63,859 bases of DNA from Camelus dromedarius (taxonomy: Eukaryota): NCBI RefSeq assembly GCF_036321535.1, contig NC_087472.1:2170001-2233859 (forward strand), written 5' to 3'. Every line of letters begins with the position of its first letter. The first letter of the stretch is position 1. Shown here one piece after another: positions 2,672 to 39,216 of the stretch. Below the pieces are notes generated by a model. The model saw only the letters and a program-made list of their open reading frames with translations, made no database searches and was not told where the DNA came from. The position numbers and the translations under genes are program-made.

Positions 2672-3031
2672 GAGGGACCCTGGACCCCAAAACACAGTCG
2701 GTCCTGGGAGGCCATAGGTCGGAATAAGCACCGGCGGCATTTCCCGCCATCCGGGTCTCGGAGGGACTGGGGTCCTGGGATGAGGGGCGGGGCTTCGGGG
2801 GTTCCAAGGGGAGGCTACATGCCGCCTGAGTCAAAGTGAGGACCCCGAGGGAGAACGGACGGATCTTGCACCCCGGGACAGTGTTGGACCTTGGAGGCCT
2901 TGGGGCAGGGTGACCACCTGCGGCGTTTCCTGCCATCCGGGTCTCGGAGGGACTGGGGTCATGGGATGAGGGGCGGGGCCTCGGGGGCTCCAAGGGGAGG
3001 CTACATGCCGCCTGAGTCAAAGTGAGGACCC
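2672..3031. repeat. 186-bp VNTR, unit 1, 2 copies (types A,C)
   Basis: ctgagtcaaaGTgaggacc with GT at 2836 and 3022. Confidence 0.95.
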
Positions 3032-5259: not shown

Positions 5260-5497
5260 GCCAGACTTGCAGCTGGGCTCCTTCTAGGCCCCTGTCCGGC
5301 AGCTTCTCCTGCCGGGCAGGAAGTGAGGCTGACTCTTCACTGTGTGTCTGAGGAGCAAGGAGTCAGCATCCTAAGTAGTGAGGGCCCGGGCCAGTGGGGG
5401 GGACACGGTGTACAGCATCTCTGGGCTCCTGTTCTCTACAATGATATGGAAGTTCATCTTCATTTCCTTTAGTGATGTTTCAGATGTTATTCGTTTT

Positions 5498-5503
5498 AAT
5501 AAA
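5498..5503 (+). terminator. Candidate polyadenylation signal AATAAA, 239 nt after the stop codon
   Basis: AATAAA in copies 1, 2, 3, 6, 9 (5498, 12769, 20042, 41681, 63502); CATAAA in copies 4, 5, 7, 8 (27320, 34593, 48961, 56237). Followed by a T-rich stretch. Usage is inferred. Confidence 0.55.
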
Positions 5504-7433: not shown

Positions 7434-9576
7434 AATAATATTAAATAAGCTTCAGTATCTTAGTTTGTGAATGATATTGATTATACACGTACTGGTACTT
7501 AGGCAGCCCAAGACTGAGTTTTGCTATTTTGTAAAACAAATTGGGAAAGTTTCCATCATACTGTGTCATGCCAAAGTAGGTAACACCGCATCGGAATAGA
7601 AATTTACTTGGAAATGTGAGAGTGATCAGCACTAAAATCGGTGGGGTCAAGAAAGAGAGAAGTAAAAGTAAACGATAGGTAATTATTGGCTCCTTATCCC
7701 TTTTCTTCTGTCAGTCTATAAAATTATAATTATGTGTGTATAACCTGGATTTGTCTGGCTTAGTTAAGAAAGTAGGAGAAAATCAACCTGGATCAGTAGG
7801 ATCCCTGCTCACCATCTCAGTTCATCCGCAGACGTTCACCGAGCCTCTCCTCTCTGGAGGGCTCGGTGTTAGCAGTGGGGACACTCGGAAAAGCAGGACA
7901 GCCCACACCTAGGATAGTCTAGGAGCCGCAGTCACATCGGGAAGTTGGTGAAAGGTCTCCTAAGTCCCATAGGGCAAATAAAAATAGGGCGAGGGGGTGG
8001 GGGTCCGGGAGAGAGCACCCAAGTGTAAGTGCCCAGCGCCAGGGCAGTTCGGGGCTTTGGGAAGCTGGGGGGGAGGTCCTTCTGTGGGAGGTGATGGTAA
8101 TGAAGCTGGGTGGTGGCGGCAGGCAGACGTGCAGACGGCGCTTGTTAGTGGTGAGAGGAACGTGTCAGGTGGGAGATTGCTCTGAGAAGTCCCTCTGGGA
8201 TCGTGGATACATCTCCTGGGCGAGGGGGGAAGGTGTACTTTGTTCAGGGATGCTTAGAGACCTGGTTATCCTGCCTGAGCTGCTAGGACACTCAGAATGC
8301 TCCAACTGCAGGGAGGAGTGGCGTTTGACGTGGCTCACAGTGTACTCCGTCCTGGCATATATAGTTGAAGAGGTTTGGTAACCGCCCCAAACTTGGGGTA
8401 GGATTTACTGGGGTGTGTTCTTGGAAACGGTCTGCTGGACACTTACACTGATGGGTCAGCTCCCCTCGATGGTCAGAATCCAAAGCCATAGATGAGGAAT
8501 GGTCCTGGACATCGCAGGGAGGAAACACCCACCGAGGCTGAATTCCAAACAGGGAATCCACCTCCGGCCCTCCCGACAGCCCTGGGAGACCCCCGGGCAC
8601 GGGGTCCGGATGTGACGGGCGCTGATGCCCCCTCCCTGGGGGGTGAGAGAGGTGAGGGCCTGGGTGAGGGAGGCCGGCTTCAGGTCTGCACAGGGAAGGA
8701 GCCCAGCGCTGCCAGGAGTCAAGGTAGAACCGTGTGGAGGGACTCGGGTTGCAGGGAATCCAGGTCGGTTCTGCTGTCAGCCCTGGGAGACCGCAGGCAG
8801 GGTTGCGGGGATCAGTGCCCCAACCCCCACCCCCGCTTCCCTCTCGGGGGTCCTGGCTGTGGAGGGGCCTGGGTCCAAGGGGAGCAAACTGAGGTGGGCA
8901 GAGGGAGGGGCCCAGGCCCAGCCTGGAGCCCAGGTGAGGAGCAGAGGGAAGGCTGAGGGACCCCCGGGGAATCCATCTCAGCGCCTGGCGTCCACAGTCC
9001 TGGGAAGCCCTGGGCTTGGTGGCCTGCTGTGAGTCCACAGACGCCCCTGGGGGTCTCTGGGCAGTGAGGGCCTTGGTGTGAAGGTGTGGGCTCGGCTCAA
9101 CAAGGGGGCGTCCCAGGACCCGCCGGGGCTCAAGGTGAGGACCCTGACGGAGGACAGCATGGGCCCCACAGATCCCCGCCCCTGCTGTCAGCCCTGGGAG
9201 GGCCTGGGTGGGATGAGCACTCGTGGGGCCCTGACTTCCTCACACCCGGGTCTCCGAGGGACGGGGGTCCTGCGATGAGGGGCGGGGCCTCGGGTGGCCA
9301 GAGGCTAGACGACACGACGCCTAAGTGACGACCCTGAGGGAAAACTGAGGGGACCCCGAACCCGGAAAAGAGGCCATCCCACAGAAAGGGGCCCTTGCTA
9401 TCAGCTGTCCGGAGGCCCGAGGGCAGGACAGGCCCCCGAGTTGTGTCGTGACTGCGGCACCCTGGTCTCACAGAGACCGGGGACTTCGTGTGAGATGAGG
9501 GGGGGACCCTCAGATCTGCAGAGGAGAGAATCCCAGGTCCCACTGGGAGTGAAGGTGACGACCGCGAGCGAGCAGT

Positions 9577-10308
9577 GAGGGACCCTGGACCCCAAAACAC
9601 AGTCGGTCCTGGGAGGCCATAGGTCGGAATAAGCACCGGCGGCGTTTCCCGCCATCCGGGTCTCGGAGGGACTGGGGTCCTGGGATGAGGGGCGGGGCTT
9701 CGGGGGTTCCAAGGGGAGGCTACATGCCGCCTGAGTCAAAGTGAGGACCCCGAGGGAGAACGGAGGGACCCTGGACCCCAAAACACAGTCGGTCCTGGGA
9801 GGCCATAGGTCGGAATAAGCACCGGCGGCATTTCCCGCCATCCGGGTCTCGGAGGGACTGGGGTCCTGGGATGAGGGGCGGGGCTTCGGGGGTTCCAAGG
9901 GGAGGCTACATGCCGCCTGAGTCAAAGTGAGGACCCCGAGGGAGAACGGAGGGATCCTGGACCCCAAGACAGTGTTGGATCTTGGAGGCCTAGGGGCAGG
10001 GTGACCACCTGCGGCGTTTCCTGCCATCCGGGTCTCGGAGGGACTGGGGTCCTGGGATGAGGGGCGGGGCCTCGGGGGCTCCAAGGGGAGGCTATCTGCC
10101 GCCTGAGTCAAAGTGAGGACCCCGAGGGGGAACGGACGGATCTTGCACCCCGGGACAGTGTTGGACCTTGGAGGCCTTGGGGCAGGGTGACCACCTGCGG
10201 CGTTTCCTGCCATCCGGGTCTCGGAGGGACTGGGGTCATGGGATGAGGGGCGGGGCCTCGGGGGCTCCAAGGGGAGGCTACATGCCGCCTGAGTCAAAGT
10301 GAGGACCC
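9577..10308. repeat. 186-bp VNTR, unit 2, 4 copies (A,A,B,C)
   Basis: GT at 9741, 9927, 10113, 10299. Confidence 0.95.
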
Positions 10309-21978: not shown

Positions 21979-24121
21979 AATAATATTAAATAAGCTTCAG
22001 TATCTTAGTTTGTGAATGATATTGATTATACACGTACTGGTACTTAGGCAGCCCAAGACTGAGTTTTGCTATTTTGTAAAACAAATTGGGAAAGTTTCCA
22101 TCATACTGTGTCATGCCAAAGTAGGTAACACCGCATCGGAATAGAAATTTACTTGGAAATGTGAGAGTGATCAGCACTAAAATCGGTGGGGTCAAGAAAG
22201 AGAGAAGTAAAAGTAAACGATAGGTAATTATTGGCTCCTTATCCCTTTTCTTCTGTCAGTCTATAAAATTATAATTATGTGTGTATAACCTGGATTTGTC
22301 TGGCTTAGTTAAGAAAGTAGGAGAAAATCAACCTGGATCAGTAGGATCCCTGCTCACCATCTCAGTTCATCCGCAGACGTTCACCGAGCCTCTCCTCTCT
22401 GGAGGGCTCGGTGTTAGCAGTGGGGACACTCGGAAAAGCAGGACAGCCCACACCTAGGATAGTCTAGGAGCCGCAGTCACATCGGGAAGTTGGTGAAAGG
22501 TCTCCTAAGTCCCATAGGGCAAATAAAAATAGGGCGAGGGGGTGGGGGTCCGGGAGAGAGCACCCAAGTGTAAGTGCCCAGCGCCAGGGCAGTTCGGGGC
22601 TTTGGGAAGCTGGGGGGGAGGTCCTTCTGTGGGAGGTGATGGTAATGAAGCTGGGTGGTGGCGGCAGGCAGACGTGCAGACGGCGCTTGTTAGTGGTGAG
22701 AGGAACGTGTCAGGTGGGAGATTGCTCTGAGAAGTCCCTCTGGGATCGTGGATACATCTCCTGGGCGAGGGGGGAAGGTGTACTTTGTTCAGGGATGCTT
22801 AGAGACCTGGTTATCCTGCCTGAGCTGCTAGGACACTCAGAATGCTCCAACTGCAGGGAGGAGTGGCGTTTGACGTGGCTCACAGTGTACTCCGTCCTGG
22901 CATATATAGTTGAAGAGGTTTGGTAACCGCCCCAAACTTGGGGTAGGATTTACTGGGGTGTGTTCTTGGAAACGGTCTGCTGGACACTTACACTGATGGG
23001 TCAGCTCCCCTCGATGGTCAGAATCCAAAGCCATAGATGAGGAATGGTCCTGGACATCGCAGGGAGGAAACACCCACCGAGGCTGAATTCCAAACAGGGA
23101 ATCCACCTCCGGCCCTCCCGACAGCCCTGGGAGACCCCCGGGCACGGGGTCCGGATGTGACGGGCGCTGATGCCCCCTCCCTGGGGGGTGAGAGAGGTGA
23201 GGGCCTGGGTGAGGGAGGCCGGCTTCAGGTCTGCACAGGGAAGGAGCCCAGCGCTGCCAGGAGTCAAGGTAGAACCGTGTGGAGGGACTCGGGTTGCAGG
23301 GAATCCAGGTCGGTTCTGCTGTCAGCCCTGGGAGACCGCAGGCAGGGTTGCGGGGATCAGTGCCCCAACCCCCACCCCCGCTTCCCTCTCGGGGGTCCTG
23401 GCTGTGGAGGGGCCTGGGTCCAAGGGGAGCAAACTGAGGTGGGCAGAGGGAGGGGCCCAGGCCCAGCCTGGAGCCCAGGTGAGGAGCAGAGGGAAGGCTG
23501 AGGGACCCCCGGGGAATCCATCTCAGCGCCTGGCGTCCACAGTCCTGGGAAGCCCTGGGCTTGGTGGCCTGCTGTGAGTCCACAGACGCCCCTGGGGGTC
23601 TCTGGGCAGTGAGGGCCTTGGTGTGAAGGTGTGGGCTCGGCTCAACAAGGGGGCGTCCCAGGACCCGCCGGGGCTCAAGGTGAGGACCCTGACGGAGGAC
23701 AGCATGGGCCCCACAGATCCCCGCCCCTGCTGTCAGCCCTGGGAGGGCCTGGGTGGGATGAGCACTCGTGGGGCCCTGACTTCCTCACACCCGGGTCTCC
23801 GAGGGACGGGGGTCCTGCGATGAGGGGCGGGGCCTCGGGTGGCCAGAGGCTAGACGACACGACGCCTAAGTGACGACCCTGAGGGAAAACTGAGGGGACC
23901 CCGAACCCGGAAAAGAAGCCATCCCACAGAAAGGGGCCCTTGCTATCAGCTGTCCGGAGGCCCGAGGGCAGGACAGGCCCCCGTGTTGTGTCGTGACTGC
24001 GGCACCCTGGTCTCACAGAGACCGGGGACTTCGTGTGAGATGAGGGGGGGACCCTCAGATCTGCAGAGCAGAGAATCCCAGGTCCCACTGGGAGTGAAGG
24101 TGACGACCGCGAGCGAGCAGT

Positions 24122-24853
24122 GAGGGACCCTGGACCCCAAAACACAGTCGGTCCTGGGAGGCCATAGGTCGGAATAAGCACCGGCGGCATTTCCCGCCAT
24201 CCGGGTCTCGGAGGGACTGGGGTCCTGGGATGAGGGGCGGGGCTTCGGGGGTTCCAAGGGGAGGCTACATGCCGCCTGAGTCAAAGTGAGGACCCCGAGG
24301 GAGAACAGAGGGATCCTGGACCCCAAGACAGTGTTGGATCTTGGAGGCCTTGGGGCAGGGTGACCACCTGTGGCGTTTCCTGCCATCCGGGTCTCGGAGG
24401 GACTGGGGTCCTGGGATGAGGGGCGGGGCCTCGGGGGCTCCAAGGGGAGGCTATCTGCCGCCTGAGTCAAAGTGAGGACCCCGAGGGAGAACGGAGGGAT
24501 CCTGGACCCCAAGACACTGTTGGATCTTGGAGGCCTTGGGGCAGGGTGACCACCTGCGGCGTTTCCTGCCATCCGGGTCTCGGAGGGACTGGGGTCCTGG
24601 GATGAGGGGCGGGGCCTCGGGGGCTCCAAGGGGAGGCTATCTGCCGCCTGAGTCAAAGTGAGGACCCCGAGGGGGAACGGACGGATCTTGCACCCCGGGA
24701 CAGTGTTGGACCTTGGAGGCCTTGGGGCAGGGTGACCACCTGCGGCGTTTCCTGCCATCCGGGTCTCGGAGGGACTGGGGTCATGGGATGAGGGGCGGGG
24801 CCTCGGGGGCTCCAAGGGGAGGCTACATGCCGCCTGAGTCAAAGTGAGGACCC
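24122..24853. repeat. 186-bp VNTR, unit 4, 4 copies (A,B,B,C)
   Basis: Four copies; the second copy is B-type. Confidence 0.95.
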
Positions 24854-26076
24854 TCAAGCAGGAAGGAGGGGCCCCTGAACCCAGAAAAGTGGCCATCCCA
24901 CAGAGAGTCGCCCTTGCTTTCAGCTGTCCGGCGGCCCGAGGGGACGACAGCCCACGTGGTTTGTCCTGACTTCCGCATCCGAGTCTCAGACAGACCTGGG
25001 ACATAGTGAAAGGGCGGGGGCCTCAGGTCTGCGGAGGAGAGAATCTCAGGGCCGCCTGGGAGTGAAGGTGACGACCGCGAGTTAGCATTCAGGGACCCTG
25101 GACCCCAAAACAGAGTCAGTCCTGGGAGGCCATGGGGCGGGAGGACCTCGGGCAGCAGTTCCTGAAATGCGGGTCTCAGAGGGACTGGGGTCTTGGTATG
25201 ACGGGCGGGGCCTCAGGTGGGCTGAGAGGGGAATCCCAGGTCCTGCCAGGAGTCAAGGTGACCCCGAGGGAGGAGTGAGGGACCCGAGATCCCAGAACAG
25301 AGGGGACGCAACCGATCCTGCCCCTGCTGTCAGCCCTGGGAGGCCTCAATGCGGGATGAGCACACGTGGTGTGTCCTGACTTCGGCATCCAGGGCTCAGA
25401 GAGACCGGGGACCTACTATCAGGATGGGGCCCTCAGGTGGTTGCAGAGCAGAATCCCAGGTCCCGCTTGGAGTCCCGGTGAGGACCCTGAGTTAGCGCGG
25501 ACAGGACCTCCCACCCTAGAAGAGTGGGAACCTGCCAGAGCCCAGGCCTCCTGCCAGCACGCGGGTCCAGGGCTGTGCCACAGTGTAGATCCGAGGTCTC
25601 CCCTCCTTTCTCTCCCAGGGGCTCCAGACACCGGGAAGGCCTAGGTCTGAGACACGTGTTCTCGGGTCACAGAGCACAGGAGGCTGGCAGTGCCAGGACT
25701 GAAGGTGAGGTGTGGGCCCTGAGTGTGTACCCGGGGGCTCCCGGAACAGAGGGGACCCCGCGAGGCCAACGTCCACTCCACACACCCCGTGTTGCCCCCA
25801 GAACCTCGGGCTGTGCCGGCTGCACCCTGAGGAGCCGCCTCACTTCCCCCGTCAGGTTCACAGACGACCGTCCACCAGGAGGAGAGCCCCTGTGAGGCCG
25901 AGGGCACCCCTGAAGAGGAGACCTGTAAGTAGCCTTTGTCAGAGCCCCCCACGGTGGGTTTCTCAGCCCGGGCCACTGACACTCCCTTTCTTCCCCAGGC
26001 CCGTGGGTCCCCATCTGTCACCCCTGCCCTCGCTGCTCTCAGCTGCCCGACACCACTCACCGTGCCTCCCGTTCAG

Positions 26077-27081
26077 ATGCGTGACCTCCACCACACTGAA
26101 GCCGACTTTCACGACCCAAGAGAGGCTGAGGATTCCGAGGATGAGCAGGACATTTGGGTTGAGGAGGAGGAGGGCGCATCCCCGTTGTCTCCCTCCTCCT
26201 CCTCCTCCTCCTCCTCCTCCTCCTTCTCCTCCTCGTCTTCCTACTCAGTCCTGTTCCTGGGCAGTGGCGAGGAGGTGGCTGATTCTGGGACACCCAGTCC
26301 CGCGCAGAGCCCTCAGGGTGTCTGCCCCTCCCCCACAGCCGTGGCAGCCCCTCCCTGGAGCCAGTCGGAAGACAATGGCCTCAGAAGCCAAGGTGAGGAG
26401 GGGCCCAGCACCGGGCAGGACCCGGCAGATGCCGAGTCCCGGCTCCACGATGCATTACATTTGATGATGGTTGACCTGATGGGCTTCCTGCTCCACAAGT
26501 ACCGCACAAAGCAGCCGACCTCAAAAGAGGAAATGCTGAATGCGGTCCTCAGAGATGACCAGGACCACTTCCCTGCGGTCTTGAGCCAAGCCTCTGAGTG
26601 TCTGCAGCTGGTCTTTGGGGTGGATGTGAAGGAGGTGGACCCCAGGGAGCACTTGTATGTCCTGGTCCCCACCCTGGGCCTCACCTACGATGGCATGCAG
26701 GACGATGGGCAGAGCATTCCCAAGACTGGCCTCCTGCTGATACTTCTGGGTGTGATTGTCCTGGAGGGCGACTTTGCTCCTGAGGAGGCAGTCTGGGGAG
26801 CACTTAGCAAGATGGGGCTGTGTGCTGGGAGGGAGCACTTCATCTATGGGGAGCCCAGGGAGCTCATCACCAACGTGTGGGTGCGGGAGGGGTACGTGGA
26901 GTACCGGCAGGTGGCCAACAGCGATCCCGCTCGCCACGAGTTCCTGTGGGGTCCCCGGGCCTACACGGAGACCAGCAAGCTGCAAGTCCTGGAACATTTC
27001 CTCAGGATCAATAGAAGGGGTCCCAGTTCTTTCCCGTCCCTGTCTGAAGAGCGAGTGAGTGATGAGGAAGAGGGGGCCTGA
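26077..27081 (+). CDS. MAGEA: MAGE-A family protein, copy 4, 334 aa (10-Ser tract, DDQDH)
   Basis: Intact frame; R>Q variant relative to copies 1-3. Confidence 0.95.
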   Translation: MRDLHHTEADFHDPREAEDSEDEQDIWVEEEEGASPLSPSSSSSSSSSSFSSSSSYSVLFLGSGEEVADSGTPSPAQSPQGVCPSPTAVAAPPWSQSEDNGLRSQGEEGPSTGQDPADAESRLHDALHLMMVDLMGFLLHKYRTKQPTSKEEMLNAVLRDDQDHFPAVLSQASECLQLVFGVDVKEVDPREHLYVLVPTLGLTYDGMQDDGQSIPKTGLLLILLGVIVLEGDFAPEEAVWGALSKMGLCAGREHFIYGEPRELITNVWVREGYVEYRQVANSDPARHEFLWGPRAYTETSKLQVLEHFLRINRRGPSSFPSLSEERVSDEEEGA

Positions 27082-27336
27082 GCCAGACTTGCAGCTGGGC
27101 TCCTTCTAGGCCCCTGTCCGGCAGCTTCTCCTGCCGGGCAGGAAGTGAGGCTGACTCTTCACTGTGTGTCTGAGGAGCAAGGAGTCAGCACCCTAAGTAG
27201 TGAGGGCCCGGGCCAGTGGGGGGGACACGGTGTACAGCATCTCTGGGCTCCTGTTCTCTACAATGATATGGAAATTCATCTTCATTTCCTTTAGTGATGT
27301 TTCAGATGTTATTCGTTTTCATAAATATCAATATAC

Positions 27337-29254
27337 TTTATTTTATTATACAGTCTTTTTAAAGATTACATTTTATTTACAGTTATGAGAAAATATTGGT
27401 TATATACGCCTTGTTCTGCAATACATTCTTGAACCTTCCTTACACCCAATAGTTTGTACTTCCCACTCCCTCACCCCTATATTGCCCCTTGCCCCTCACC
27501 CCTCCCCACTGGTAATCACTAGTTTGTTCTCTATGAGCCTGCTTCTTCTTTGTTATACTCACTAGTTTGTTGTATTTTTTAGAGTCCACATATAAATTGA
27601 TATCATACAGTATTTGTCTTTCTCTGTCTGATTTATTTCACTTAGCATAATGTCCTCCAAGTCCATCCATCTTGCTGNNNNNNNNNNNNNNNNNNNNNNN
27701 NNNNNNNNNNNNNNNNNNNNNNNNNNNNNNNNNNNNNNNNNNNNNNNNNNNNNNNNNNNNNNNNNNNNNNNNNNNNNNNNNNNNNNNNNNNNNNNNNNNN
27801 NNNNNNNNNNNNNNNNNTAGATAACACAGCTATGAATATTGGGTGCGTGTATCTTTTCAAATTAGTATCTGGTTTTTTTTTTGTTTTTTTTTTTTTTTGA
27901 GATGTATACCCAGGAATGGAATTGCTGGGTCACTTGGTAGTTCTAGTTTTAGTTTTTTGAGAAACGGCATACTGTTTTCCAGAGTGGTCACACCAATTTA
28001 CATCCCCACCAACAGTGTAGGAGGGATCCCTTCTCTCCACATCTTCGCCAACATTTGCTATTTGCNNNNNNNNNNNNNNNNNNNNNNNNNNNNNNNNNNN
28101 NNNNNNNNNNNNNNNNNNNNNNNNNNNNNNNNNNNNNNNNNNNNNNNNNNNNNNNNNNNNNNNNNNNNNNNNNNNNNNNNNNNNNNNNNNNNNCTTTGGA
28201 CAAATGTCTATTGTGTTGTTCTGCCCGTTTTTAGTTGGGTCATTTGTTTTTTTGATGTTGAATTGTATGAGCTGTTTATATATGGTGGTTATTGCTCCCT
28301 TGTCAGTTGTAACGTTTGCAAATATTTTCTCCCCTTCAGTAGGTTGTTGTTTTAATTTAGTCAGTGGGTTCCCTTGCTGTGCAGAAGCTTTTAAGTATAA
28401 TTAGGTCCCCGCTGTTTATTTTTCCTTTTATTTCCTTTGTTTTAGGACATGGATCCAAAAAGTTATTGCTGTAATTTATGTCAGAGAGTGTTCTGCCTAT
28501 GTTTTCCTCTAGGAGTATTATAGTATCCAGTCTTAAATGTAGATCTTTAATCTATTTTGAGTTTATTTTTGTATATGGTGTTAGAGAATGTTCTAAGTTC
28601 ATTGTTTGACAGGTAGCTGTCCAGTTTTCCCAGAGCCACTTATTGAAGAGACTGTCTTTTCTCCATTCAATATCCTTGCTTCCTTTGTCGTACATTAATT
28701 GACGGTAAGTGTGTGGGTTTACTTCTCGCCTCTCTATCCTGTTCCATTGATCTGTGTGTCTGTTTGGGGGCCAGAACCGCACTGTTTTGATTACTACAGC
28801 TTTGTAGTATAGTCCAATGTCAGGGAGCATGATTTCTCCAGCTCTGTTCTTCATTCCCAAGATTGTTTTAGCTATTGGGGTTCTTTTCTTTTTCCAGACA
28901 CTTTTTTAAATTATTTGTTCTGGTTCTGAGAAAAATGCCATTGTTATTTTGACAGGGATTGCTTTGAATCTGTAGATTGCCTTGGGTAGTATGGTCACTG
29001 GGTTGTTTGGTCAACAACACTGATTCTTCCAATCCAAGAACACGGTATATCTTTCCATCTGTTGGTGTCATCTTCAGCTTCTTGCATCAGTGTCTTGTAG
29101 TTATTGGAGTACAGGTCTTTGGTCTCCTTAGCTAGGTTTATTACTAGATTATTTATTCTCTTTGATGTGATGGTAAATGGGATTGTTTCCTTAATTTCTC
29201 TTTCTGATACTCCTTTGTTAGTGTGTAAGATGCAACAGATTTCTGTATATTAAT
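27337..29254 (-). mobile_element. LINE-1 remnant, copy after gene 4
   Basis: Near-identical to 5515-7433. Confidence 0.93.
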
Positions 29255-31397
29255 AATAATATTAAATAAGCTTCAGTATCTTAGTTTGTGAATGATATTG
29301 ATTATACACGTACTGGTACTTAGGCAGCCCAAGACTGAGTTTTGCTATTTTGTAAAACAAATTGGGAAAGTTTCCATCATACTGTGTCATGCCAAAGTAG
29401 GTAACACCGCATCGGAATAGAAATTTACTTGGAAATGTGAGAGTGATCAGCACTAAAATCGGTGGGGTCAAGAAAGAGAGAAGTAAAAGTAAACGATAGG
29501 TAATTATTGGCTCCTTATCCCTTTTCTTCTGTCAGTCTATAAAATTATAATTATGTGTGTATAACCTGGATTTGTCTGGCTTAGTTAAGAAAGTAGGAGA
29601 AAATCAACCTGGATCAGTAGGATCCCTGCTCACCATCTCAGTTCATCCGCAGACGTTCACCGAGCCTCTCCTCTCTGGAGGGCTCGGTGTTAGCAGTGGG
29701 GACACTCGGAAAAGCAGGACAGCCCACACCTAGGATAGTCTAGGAGCCGCAGTCACATCGGGAAGTTGGTGAAAGGTCTCCTAAGTCCCATAGGGCAAAT
29801 AAAAATAGGGCGAGGGGGTGGGGGTCCGGGAGAGAGCACCCAAGTGTAAGTGCCCAGCGCCAGGGCAGTTCGGGGCTTTGGGAAGCTGGGGGGGAGGTCC
29901 TTCTGTGGGAGGTGATGGTAATGAAGCTGGGTGGTGGCGGCAGGCAGACGTGCAGACGGCGCTTGTTAGTGGTGAGAGGAACGTGTCAGGTGGGAGATTG
30001 CTCTGAGAAGTCCCTCTGGGATCGTGGATACATCTCCTGGGCGAGGGGGGAAGGTGTACTTTGTTCAGGGATGCTTAGAGACCTGGTTATCCTGCCTGAG
30101 CTGCTAGGACACTCAGAATGCTCCAACTGCAGGGAGGAGTGGCGTTTGACGTGGCTCACAGTGTACTCCGTCCTGGCATATATAGTTGAAGAGGTTTGGT
30201 AACCGCCCCAAACTTGGGGTAGGATTTACTGGGGTGTGTTCTTGGAAACGGTCTGCTGGACACTTACACTGATGGGTCAGCTCCCCTCGATGGTCAGAAT
30301 CCAAAGCCATAGATGAGGAATGGTCCTGGACATCGCAGGGAGGAAACACCCACCGAGGCTGAATTCCAAACAGGGAATCCACCTCCGGCCCTCCCGACAG
30401 CCCTGGGAGACCCCCGGGCACGGGGTCCGGATGTGACGGGCGCTGATGCCCCCTCCCTGGGGGGTGAGAGAGGTGAGGGCCTGGGTGAGGGAGGCCGGCT
30501 TCAGGTCTGCACAGGGAAGGAGCCCAGCGCTGCCAGGAGTCAAGGTAGAACCGTGTGGAGGGACTCGGGTTGCAGGGAATCCAGGTCGGTTCTGCTGTCA
30601 GCCCTGGGAGACCGCAGGCAGGGTTGCGGGGATCAGTGCCCCAACCCCCACCCCCGCTTCCCTCTCGGGGGTCCTGGCTGTGGAGGGGCCTGGGTCCAAG
30701 GGGAGCAAACTGAGGTGGGCAGAGGGAGGGGCCCAGGCCCAGCCTGGAGCCCAGGTGAGGAGCAGAGGGAAGGCTGAGGGACCCCCGGGGAATCCATCTC
30801 AGCGCCTGGCGTCCACAGTCCTGGGAAGCCCTGGGCTTGGTGGCCTGCTGTGAGTCCACAGACGCCCCTGGGGGTCTCTGGGCAGTGAGGGCCTTGGTGT
30901 GAAGGTGTGGGCTCGGCTCAACAAGGGGGCGTCCCAGGACCCGCCGGGGCTCAAGGTGAGGACCCTGACGGAGGACAGCATGGGCCCCACAGATCCCCGC
31001 CCCTGCTGTCAGCCCTGGGAGGGCCTGGGTGGGATGAGCACTCGTGGGGCCCTGACTTCCTCACACCCGGGTCTCCGAGGGACGGGGGTCCTGCGATGAG
31101 GGGCGGGGCCTCGGGTGGCCAGAGGCTAGACGACACGACGCCTAAGTGACGACCCTGAGGGAAAACTGAGGGGACCCCGAACCCGGAAAAGAAGCCATCC
31201 CACAGAAAGGGGCCCTTGCTATCAGCTGTCCGGAGGCCCGAGGGCAGGACAGGCCCCCGTGTTGTGTCGTGACTGCGGCACCCTGGTCTCACAGAGACCG
31301 GGGACTTCGTGTGAGATGAGGGGGGGACCCTCAGATCTGCAGAGCAGAGAATCCCAGGTCCCACTGGGAGTGAAGGTGACGACCGCGAGCGAGCAGT

Positions 31398-36527: not shown

Positions 36528-38670
36528 AATAATATTAAATAAGCTTCAGTATCTTAGTTTGTGAATGATATTGATTATACACGTACTGGTACTTAGGCAG
36601 CCCAAGACTGAGTTTTGCTATTTTGTAAAACAAATTGGGAAAGTTTCCATCATACTGTGTCATGCCAAAGTAGGTAACACCGCATCGGAATAGAAATTTA
36701 CTTGGAAATGTGAGAGTGATCAGCACTAAAATCGGTGGGGTCAAGAAAGAGAGAAGTAAAAGTAAACGATAGGTAATTATTGGCTCCTTATCCCTTTTCT
36801 TCTGTCAGTCTATAAAATTATAATTATGTGTGTATAACCTGGATTTGTCTGGCTTAGTTAAGAAAGTAGGAGAAAATCAACCTGGATCAGTAGGATCCCT
36901 GCTCACCATCTCAGTTCATCCGCAGACGTTCACCGAGCCTCTCCTCTCTGGAGGGCTCGGTGTTAGCAGTGGGGACACTCGGAAAAGCAGGACAGCCCAC
37001 ACCTAGGATAGTCTAGGAGCCGCAGTCACATCGGGAAGTTGGTGAAAGGTCTCCTAAGTCCCATAGGGCAAATAAAAATAGGGCGAGGGGGTGGGGGTCC
37101 GGGAGAGAGCACCCAAGTGTAAGTGCCCAGCGCCAGGGCAGTTCGGGGCTTTGGGAAGCTGGGGGGGAGGTCCTTCTGTGGGAGGTGATGGTAATGAAGC
37201 TGGGTGGTGGCGGCAGGCAGACGTGCAGACGGCGCTTGTTAGTGGTGAGAGGAACGTGTCAGGTGGGAGATTGCTCTGAGAAGTCCCTCTGGGATCGTGG
37301 ATACATCTCCTGGGCGAGGGGGGAAGGTGTACTTTGTTCAGGGATGCTTAGAGACCTGGTTATCCTGCCTGAGCTGCTAGGACACTCAGAATGCTCCAAC
37401 TGCAGGGAGGAGTGGCGTTTGACGTGGCTCACAGTGTACTCCGTCCTGGCATATATAGTTGAAGAGGTTTGGTAACCGCCCCAAACTTGGGGTAGGATTT
37501 ACTGGGGTGTGTTCTTGGAAACGGTCTGCTGGACACTTACACTGATGGGTCAGCTCCCCTCGATGGTCAGAATCCAAAGCCATAGATGAGGAATGGTCCT
37601 GGACATCGCAGGGAGGAAACACCCACCGAGGCTGAATTCCAAACAGGGAATCCACCTCCGGCCCTCCCGACAGCCCTGGGAGACCCCCGGGCACGGGGTC
37701 CGGATGTGACGGGCGCTGATGCCCCCTCCCTGGGGGGTGAGAGAGGTGAGGGCCTGGGTGAGGGAGGCCGGCTTCAGGTCTGCACAGGGAAGGAGCCCAG
37801 CGCTGCCAGGAGTCAAGGTAGAACCGTGTGGAGGGACTCGGGTTGCAGGGAATCCAGGTCGGTTCTGCTGTCAGCCCTGGGAGACCGCAGGCAGGGTGGC
37901 GGAGATCAGTGCCCCAACCCCCACCCCCGCTTCCCTCTCGGGGGTCCTGGCTGTGGAGGGGCCTGGGTCCAAGGGGAGCAAACTGAGGTGGGCAGAGGGA
38001 GGGGCCCAGGCCCAGCCTGGAGCCCAGGTGAGGAGCAGAGGGAAGGCTGAGGGACCCCCGGGGAATCCATCTCAGCGCCTGGCGTCCACAGTCCTGGGAA
38101 GCCCTGGGCTTGGTGGCCTGCTGTGAGTCCACAGACGCCCCTGGGGGTCTCTGGGCAGTGAGGGCCTTGGTGTGAAGGTGTGGGCTCGGCTCAACAAGGG
38201 GGCGTCCCAGGACCCGCCGGGGCTCAAGGTGAGGACCCTGACGGAGGACAGCATGGGCCCCACAGATCCCCGCCCCTGCTGTCAGCCCTGGGAGGGCCTG
38301 GGTGGGATGAGCACTCGTGGGGCCCTGACTTCCTCACACCCGGGTCTCCGAGGGACGGGGGTCCTGCGATGAGGGGCGGGGCCTCGGGTGGCCAGAGGCT
38401 AGACGACACGACGCCTAAGTGACGACCCTGAGGGAAAACTGAGGGGACCCCGAACCCGGAAAAGAGGCCATCCCACAGAAAGGGGCCCTTGCTATCAGCT
38501 GTCCGGAGGCCCGAGGGCAGGACAGGCCCCCGTGTTGTGTCGTGACTGCGGCACCCTGGTCTCACAGAGACCGGGGACTTCGTGTGAGATGAGGGGGGGA
38601 CCCTCAGATCTGCAGAGGAGAGAATCCCAGGTCCCACTGGGAGTGAAGGTGACGACCGCGAGCGAGCAGT

Positions 38671-39216
38671 GAGGGACCCTGGACCCCAAAACACAGTCGG
38701 TCCTGGGAGGCCATAGGTCGGAATAAGCACCGGCGGCATTTCCCGCCATCCGGGTCTCGGAGGGACTGGGGTCCTAGGATGAGGGGCGGGGCTTCGGGGG
38801 TTCCAAGGGGAGGCTACATGCCGCCTGAGTCAAAGTGAGGACCCCGAGGGAGAACGGAGGGATCCTGGACCCCAAGACAGTGTTGGACCTTGGAGGCCTA
38901 GGGGCAGGGTGACCACCAGTGGCATTTCCCGACATCCGGGTCTCGGAGGGACTGGGGTCCTGGGATGAGGGGCGGGGATTGGGGTGGCCAGAGGGGAGAC
39001 CACATGCTGCCTGAGTCAAGGTGAGGACCCCGAGGGAGAACGGAGGGATCCTGGACCCCAAGACAGTGTTGGACCTTGGAGGCCTTGGGGCAGGGTGACC
39101 ACCTGTGGCGTTTCCTGCCATCCGGGTCTCGGAGGGACTGGGGTCCTTGGATGAGGGGCGGGGCCTCGGGGGCTCCAAGGGGAGGCTACATGCCGCCTGA
39201 GTCAAAGTGAGGACCC
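38671..39216. repeat. 186-bp VNTR, unit 6, 3 copies (A,D,B/C)
   Basis: Three copies; divergent D copy ending ctgagtcaagGTgagg (GT at 39021). Confidence 0.95.

Follow-up and report, generated by a model that had tools for sequence, protein, structure and literature searches.

Transposable element (TE) insertions in mammalian 3' UTRs can give a gene a new 3' end or displace the existing one. In the D4Z4/DUX4 macrosatellite only the last unit meets a polymorphic poly(A) signal, which sits outside the repeat. A single-base change of the hexamer itself is known from the beta-globin gene, where c.*108A>C (AATAAA>CATAAA) is a catalogued thalassaemia allele (PMC10886608; Ma et al. 2001 as cited in PMC7356254). 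Globin poly(A) signal mutants yield extended transcripts ending at downstream signals, and read-through from HBA2 can disturb HBA1 (PMC7356254). Furthermore, piRNA-guided decay has been shown for mRNAs whose 3' UTR contains retrotransposon sequence (Watanabe et al. 2015; PMC4352877).

The DNA analysed here, referred to as the window, comprises 63,859 nucleotides of Camelus dromedarius (NC_087472.1) and is filled by a head-to-tail gene array that repeats about every 7.27 kb. Its nine array units were compared with one Bactrian unit and four alpaca units. On balance we favour the interpretation that a proximal poly(A) signal was born at the junction of an L1 insertion, that four of the nine units share one derived A-to-C change in it, and that this change would partially weaken the signal and permit some read-through.

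All nine array copies contain an intact MAGE-A8-like coding exon of 330-334 aa, which in copy 4 extends over 26077..27081 of the plus strand (334 aa). The protein carries the Pfam domains MAGE_N (PF12440, 2e-13) and MAGE (PF01454, 8e-15) within a single coding exon, as is characteristic of type I MAGE genes. A protein search with the N-terminal 248 residues only (26074-26817) returned the Camelus bactrianus “melanoma-associated antigen 8-like” protein at 99% identity and Vicugna pacos next at 85%, so that the nearest named relatives are MAGE-A8-like. The copies differ at the protein level only in the length of a serine run (26192-26203 and equivalents), which accounts for the range of 330-334 aa, and in R162Q (26561 and equivalents), where copies 1-3 have R and copies 4-9 have Q, a pattern unlike that of the hexamer types described below. 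Upstream of the gene lies a 186-bp repeat that is present in 4.1 copies in most units and in about 3.1 copies in copy 6 (2672-3031, 9547-10308, 38641-39216 and equivalents). It holds many of the SNPs between units, and the alignment of copy 1 is shorter by 372 nt in this repeat, corresponding to about two repeat units. An Rfam search with window positions 22273-26818, taken from one unit, matched no family, and a literature search turned up no publication describing a MAGE array in camels.

Anchoring on the preceding 12 nt located nine hexamer sites on the plus strand with a spacing of 7088-7280 nt. Copies 1, 2, 3, 6 and 9 read AATAAA (5498..5503 in copy 1, and 12769, 20042, 41681 and 63502), whereas copies 4, 5, 7 and 8 read CATAAA (27320..27325 in copy 4, and 34593, 48961 and 56237). 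The hexamer is located 239 nt past the stop codon of the intact MAGE gene and is directly followed by the antisense L1. The proximal 3' UTR in front of it (27082..27319) is homologous to the 3' UTRs of the rhino, zebra, whale and alpaca paralogues and contains none of the other poly(A) hexamer variants, which leaves the hexamer as the first recognised signal downstream of the stop. The U fraction is 0.55 on both sides (the downstream value being taken at +10 to +50), 13 T-rich pentamers derived from the antisense L1 tail follow downstream, and an AATATA is found at 27330, 10 nt past the hexamer start. The site thus combines a first signal, a downstream U-rich element and conservation in related genomes, as mammalian AAUAAA-type sites do.

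The L1 itself is 5'-truncated and lies antisense to the gene on the minus strand (27330..29254), where it comprises the end of ORF2, the 3' UTR and a decayed A-rich tail. Its minus strand matches residues 862-962 of the human L1 ORF2p at 28555-28860 (E 5e-35), with more ORF2 pieces on the same strand up to 29071 and the AATAAA motifs of the tail at 27337, 27342 and 27372. Hence the ORF2 homology resides on one strand and is colinear with the A-rich 3' end, as in a LINE-1 element. Homology to L1-free relatives stops at about 27305-27329 and restarts at about 29255; the element therefore measures about 1.93 kb, a length that includes two masked N runs per unit. The sequence-only reading had recognised a MAGE-A gene, the distribution of AATAAA and CATAAA among the copies and 1.9 kb of antisense L1 directly behind the hexamer; the domains and nearest relatives, the nine anchored sites, and the ORF2p match together with the homology break bear out these three claims. 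On the minus strand the A-type units alone read ATTAAA across the variant base (5495-5500, 12766, 20039, 41678, 63499), an extra signal just beyond the minus-strand AATAAA signals of the L1, and the C units read ATGAAA there.

The L1-free relatives comprise an alpaca single-copy paralogue (L003), the alpaca paralogues L006 and L007, black rhino (L005), zebra (L009) and beaked whale (L010). At their empty sites, ...CCTTTTAA runs into an A/G-rich 10-mer and then TTTAAT, which is read here as a TTT/AA-type L1 nick site. The comparison places the L1 insertion inside the old 3' UTR, and its presence in the alpaca array indicates an age at least equal to that of the camel-alpaca split. The left junction consists of a probable target-site duplication on the plus strand (27321..27329), a 9-nt AT-rich segment with the sequence AATAAATAT (ATAAATAT in the C copies) that holds five of the six hexamer bases and that relatives without the L1 lack. 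Its probable counterpart on the right (29255..29266, plus strand; AATAATATT) overlaps an ATTAAA at 29261. The 9 nt at the far junction match those at the left imperfectly, and since the segment is short and AT-rich, the interpretation as a decayed target-site duplication is made with moderate confidence. An assignment of the hexamer to the L1 tail was considered and rejected, as the 9 nt resemble both the 9 nt of the far junction and the target in the outgroups. The hexamer has no counterpart in any L1-free relative compared; its presence at this junction is probably owed to the L1 insertion. Each of the L1-free alpaca MAGE paralogues is followed by a convergent gene with an HSF-type DNA-binding domain (L003 11652-13087; L006 6284-7020), and L006 and L007 are duplicates located about 34 kb apart on an X-sized scaffold.

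The same array with the same antisense L1 was detected in alpaca, where it has a period of about 7.31 kb on a 503-kb contig. All four distinct alpaca array hexamers are AATAAA, and so is that of the Bactrian array unit (L008), which shares 97.3-98.8% identity with the units of the window. Since the four alpaca copies and the Bactrian copy all carry A, AATAAA is the older state and C the derived one. The alpaca contig is unplaced, and its first unit is flanked by an opposite-strand gene with a Cor1 (SYCP3/XLR-like) domain (L001 1-3979).

The signals behind the L1 tell more about which 3' end has been in use. A conserved distal AATAAA occupies one aligned position in all three outgroups, about 180 nt beyond the insertion point: at stop+424 in rhino (L005, around 4408), stop+389 in zebra (L009, around 3921) and stop+468 in beaked whale (L010, around 3916). 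The camel and alpaca arrays alike have AGTAAA there, and in copy 4 the decayed ancestral signal is present as AGTAAA twice (29482..29493, with starts at 29482 and 29488, plus strand; AGTAAAAGTAAA). The decay of the distal signal and the retention of the proximal AATAAA in the alpaca copies and the Bactrian copy point to the proximal site as the working 3' end. This evolutionary argument is the strongest indication available of such a role for the proximal site, presumably since before the camel-alpaca split.

A transcript that passed the hexamer would find no plus-strand AATAAA or ATTAAA within the L1, where only the weak plus-strand hexamers AATACA (27420), TATAAA (27591) and AAAAAG (28457) were detected. 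An ATTAAA with GU-rich sequence behind it lies at the far L1 junction (29261-29266, plus strand) and recurs at all nine junctions (535, 7440, 14713, 21985, 36534, 43626, 50902 and 58178 for the other units). The alpaca units and the Bactrian L008 have ATTTAA instead, which marks the ATTAAA as the product of a T-to-A change that is derived and has become fixed at every one of the nine junctions in the window. Further downstream follow the AGTAAA pair, a TATAAA at 29538 and the next plus-strand AATAAA (29798..29803), which has a U-poor context and lies before the promoter repeats of the next copy at 31368.

As the units are arranged head-to-tail and the next promoter-repeat block begins about 4 kb past the hexamer of copy 4, read-through from C units might mainly dampen the next copy via its promoter repeats, in the manner in which HBA2 read-through affects HBA1 (PMC7356254). 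This is nevertheless considered very unlikely, because three more signals (29261, 29482/29488 and 29798) precede the next promoter and little transcription should reach it.

Within about 7.0 kb of each unit, 11 linked type-diagnostic SNPs, the A/C site among them, follow the pattern 1-1-1-2-2-1-2-2-1 along the array. The ten others are located at 23917, 24069, 24307, 24339, 27191, 27274, 27826, 27828, 28444 and 27479, the last with the exception of copy 9. According to the outgroup states, the derived letter of type II units is C (27320, 27191), and those of type I units are G (27274, 27479) and T (28444). These data argue for two unit lineages, each with derived letters of its own. Units spaced three apart in the array differ least (4, 7 and 36 differences, compared with 9-58 otherwise), and units 1-3 are nearly identical. 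The linkage of the SNPs and the minimum at the three-unit offset indicate that the C allele arose once. Its distribution is best read as the result of a unit duplication, after which block 4-5-6 was copied into 7-8-9. The L1 variants that the sequence-only reading had ascribed to these units are indeed confined to copies 4, 5, 7 and 8. The repeated “switch” that it saw in four copies is replaced by one inherited mutation, as follows from the 11 linked SNPs and the three-unit minimum. The chance that one of 11 diagnostic SNPs falls in a given hexamer is about 1%, which does not count as evidence of selection because the motif was chosen post hoc among many possible motifs.

Near-identical 7.3-kb repeats are difficult to assemble, and the DNA-like sequencing runs considered below contain only 0.90-0.91 of the words sampled from part of a unit. 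Thus, the two unit types might be imagined as an assembly artefact, in which alleles or wrongly joined reads only look like neighbouring units of one array. Such an artefact is extremely improbable, given that the 11 SNPs keep perfect phase across 4.5 kb of each unit, that the array shows a regular three-unit higher-order pattern, and that the units differ independently in VNTR copy number and serine-run length.

With regard to the effect of the substitution, CAUAAA ranks below AAUAAA, AUUAAA and AGUAAA in a bicistronic reporter (PMC5796225), and older in vitro work gives the same low rank, as far as it is cited there. This ranking and the HBB allele agree with the earlier description of CATAAA as a weak variant signal. 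On the basis of the weaker performance of CAUAAA in assays and the globin precedent, reduced cleavage is expected at 27320 and its equivalents in the four C units; the change should weaken the proximal signal, probably short of abolishing it. The read-through path and its likely ends had also been proposed before, with ATTAAA at 7440 and AATAAA at 7977 as the next sense-strand signals. Both are in place, their equivalents in copy 4 being those at 29261 and 29798, and the path agrees with the signals found after the hexamer.

It is possible, though we regard it as distinctly less probable than the partial weakening of the signal, that the variant is silent and that the U-rich elements and the AATATA let both unit types cleave alike, so that the SNP serves only as a lineage marker. 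The U fraction of 0.55 on both sides, the 13 downstream T-rich pentamers and the AATATA at 27330 are all in keeping with this, and among pig poly(A) sites CAUAAA peaks at the position expected of a true signal, which places it among the genuine signals in surveys of mammalian poly(A) sites (PMC8773104). The identical substitution in HBB, however, lowers the output enough to be listed for beta-thalassaemia, and the hexamer ranks only fourth in the reporter tests.

A further comparison bears on the silent variant as well as on read-through. Words sampled from positions 25936-27677, a query that consists of the gene part and 337 nt of the L1 in a C-type unit, are contained to 0.54-0.77 in RNA runs, several of them labelled reproductive system, and to 0.90-0.91 in DNA-like runs. 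If the predicted splice acceptor 25998/25999 and cleavage near 27340 are assumed, the exonic share of the query is 1342/1742 = 0.77, which equals the ceiling reached by the RNA runs. This ceiling is compatible with transcripts that stop near the hexamer and is weak evidence against abundant read-through, the comparison of word shares being indirect in that contigs drop rare forms and a share states how many words are present and not which ones. That the shares stop at the exonic fraction despite the C-type query would also suit a silent variant. An exact look-up of the 41-aa ORF spanning the hexamer, aimed at run contigs that cross the junction, returned nothing.

In the C units the weakened first signal comes before 1.9 kb of antisense L1, with a defined second signal at the far junction. 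As the sequence-only reading proposed, this order of elements could also suggest an array that is split into short-mRNA copies and read-through copies, with L1-antisense RNAs that feed or attract piRNAs and result in L1 silencing or in regulated self-attenuation. The ORFs of the C units are intact, RNA of the gene was found in libraries from reproductive tissue, and in mouse spermatocytes retrotransposon sequence in 3' UTRs is a piRNA target (PMC4352877). Nevertheless, this model seems quite unlikely. The C allele is one hitch-hiking mutation among 11 linked SNPs and bears no sign of selection, the RNA runs do not rise above the exonic word share, and the L1 is older than the camel-alpaca split and a poor match to active L1s. 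As the L1 is at least that old, a role against active L1s is unlikely. A more explicit version, in which A units would produce short mRNAs and C units isoforms with a 2.2-kb 3' UTR that end at the new ATTAAA and act as piRNA substrates or targets, with the ratio of copy types tuning the MAGE dosage, is likewise held to be improbable. The coupling to piRNAs is speculation, and a central role for it is unlikely.

Taking partial weakening of the proximal signal as the preferred interpretation, the history of the locus may be reconstructed as follows. Before the camel-alpaca split, an L1 would have inserted in antisense orientation at a TTT/AA-type site of the old 3' UTR, leaving a canonical AATAAA at the left junction, within the probable 9-nt duplication of the target site, and supplying a U-rich downstream element with its antisense tail. 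The proximal site would then have taken over, and the conserved distal AATAAA would have decayed to AGTAAA. Later, a single A-to-C mutation presumably created CATAAA, which was carried together with the ten linked SNPs to four of the nine units by unit duplication and the duplication of a three-unit block. Proximal cleavage in the C units is predicted to be weakened, its persistence being aided by the U-rich flanks and the AATATA 10 nt on. A fraction of their transcripts may thus cross the antisense L1 and end at ATTAAA 29261, AGTAAA 29482 or AATAAA 29798, giving 3' UTRs of 2.2-2.7 kb and probably a lower protein output. Such a variant could be tolerated because the gene has many copies, and it is most likely neutral or mildly hypomorphic. 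CATAAA would thereby represent an ordinary subtype- and lineage-marking SNP with a plausible hypomorphic effect.

For an amplified cancer-testis gene, the array offers a clean succession of changes at the 3' end that can be dated, leading from the L1 insertion via a new proximal signal to the decay of the distal one. In the last step about half of the copies in the array of one species would weaken the new signal, and a fresh ATTAAA appears behind the L1. If the unit types differ in their 3' ends, the array would constitute a natural experiment on poly(A) signal strength, in which promoters and coding sequences are near-identical and the diagnostic SNPs allow phasing.

Among the systems described so far, the locus resembles other TE-associated poly(A) sites in having acquired an L1 in a 3' UTR together with a new proximal signal on the edge of the insertion, while a conserved distal signal decays. 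It departs from them in two respects: the camel hexamer lies in the duplicated target and not in the TE body, and the unit of gene plus L1 was then amplified into a tandem array common to camels and alpaca. At hexamer position 1 the camel array shows the very substitution of HBB c.*108A>C, and HBB poly(A) signal mutants show less normal mRNA together with extended transcripts to downstream cryptic signals (PMC7356254, PMC10886608). HBB, however, is a single-copy gene with one signal, whereas the camel array has five or more sister copies with AATAAA, by which a partial defect would be buffered. The predicted read-through isoform corresponds to the mRNAs of Watanabe et al. 2015 in that it is a germline mRNA with a piece of a retrotransposon in its 3' UTR. 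The L1 of the camel isoform, however, is ancient and diverged, and for this predicted isoform the precedent goes no further than to show that piRNAs can target 3' UTRs with L1 sequence. As in D4Z4/DUX4, where it decides how the transcripts are finished, a one-base difference in a poly(A) hexamer is found at a tandem gene array; in the camel array, unlike in D4Z4, a signal is present in each unit and varies from unit to unit.
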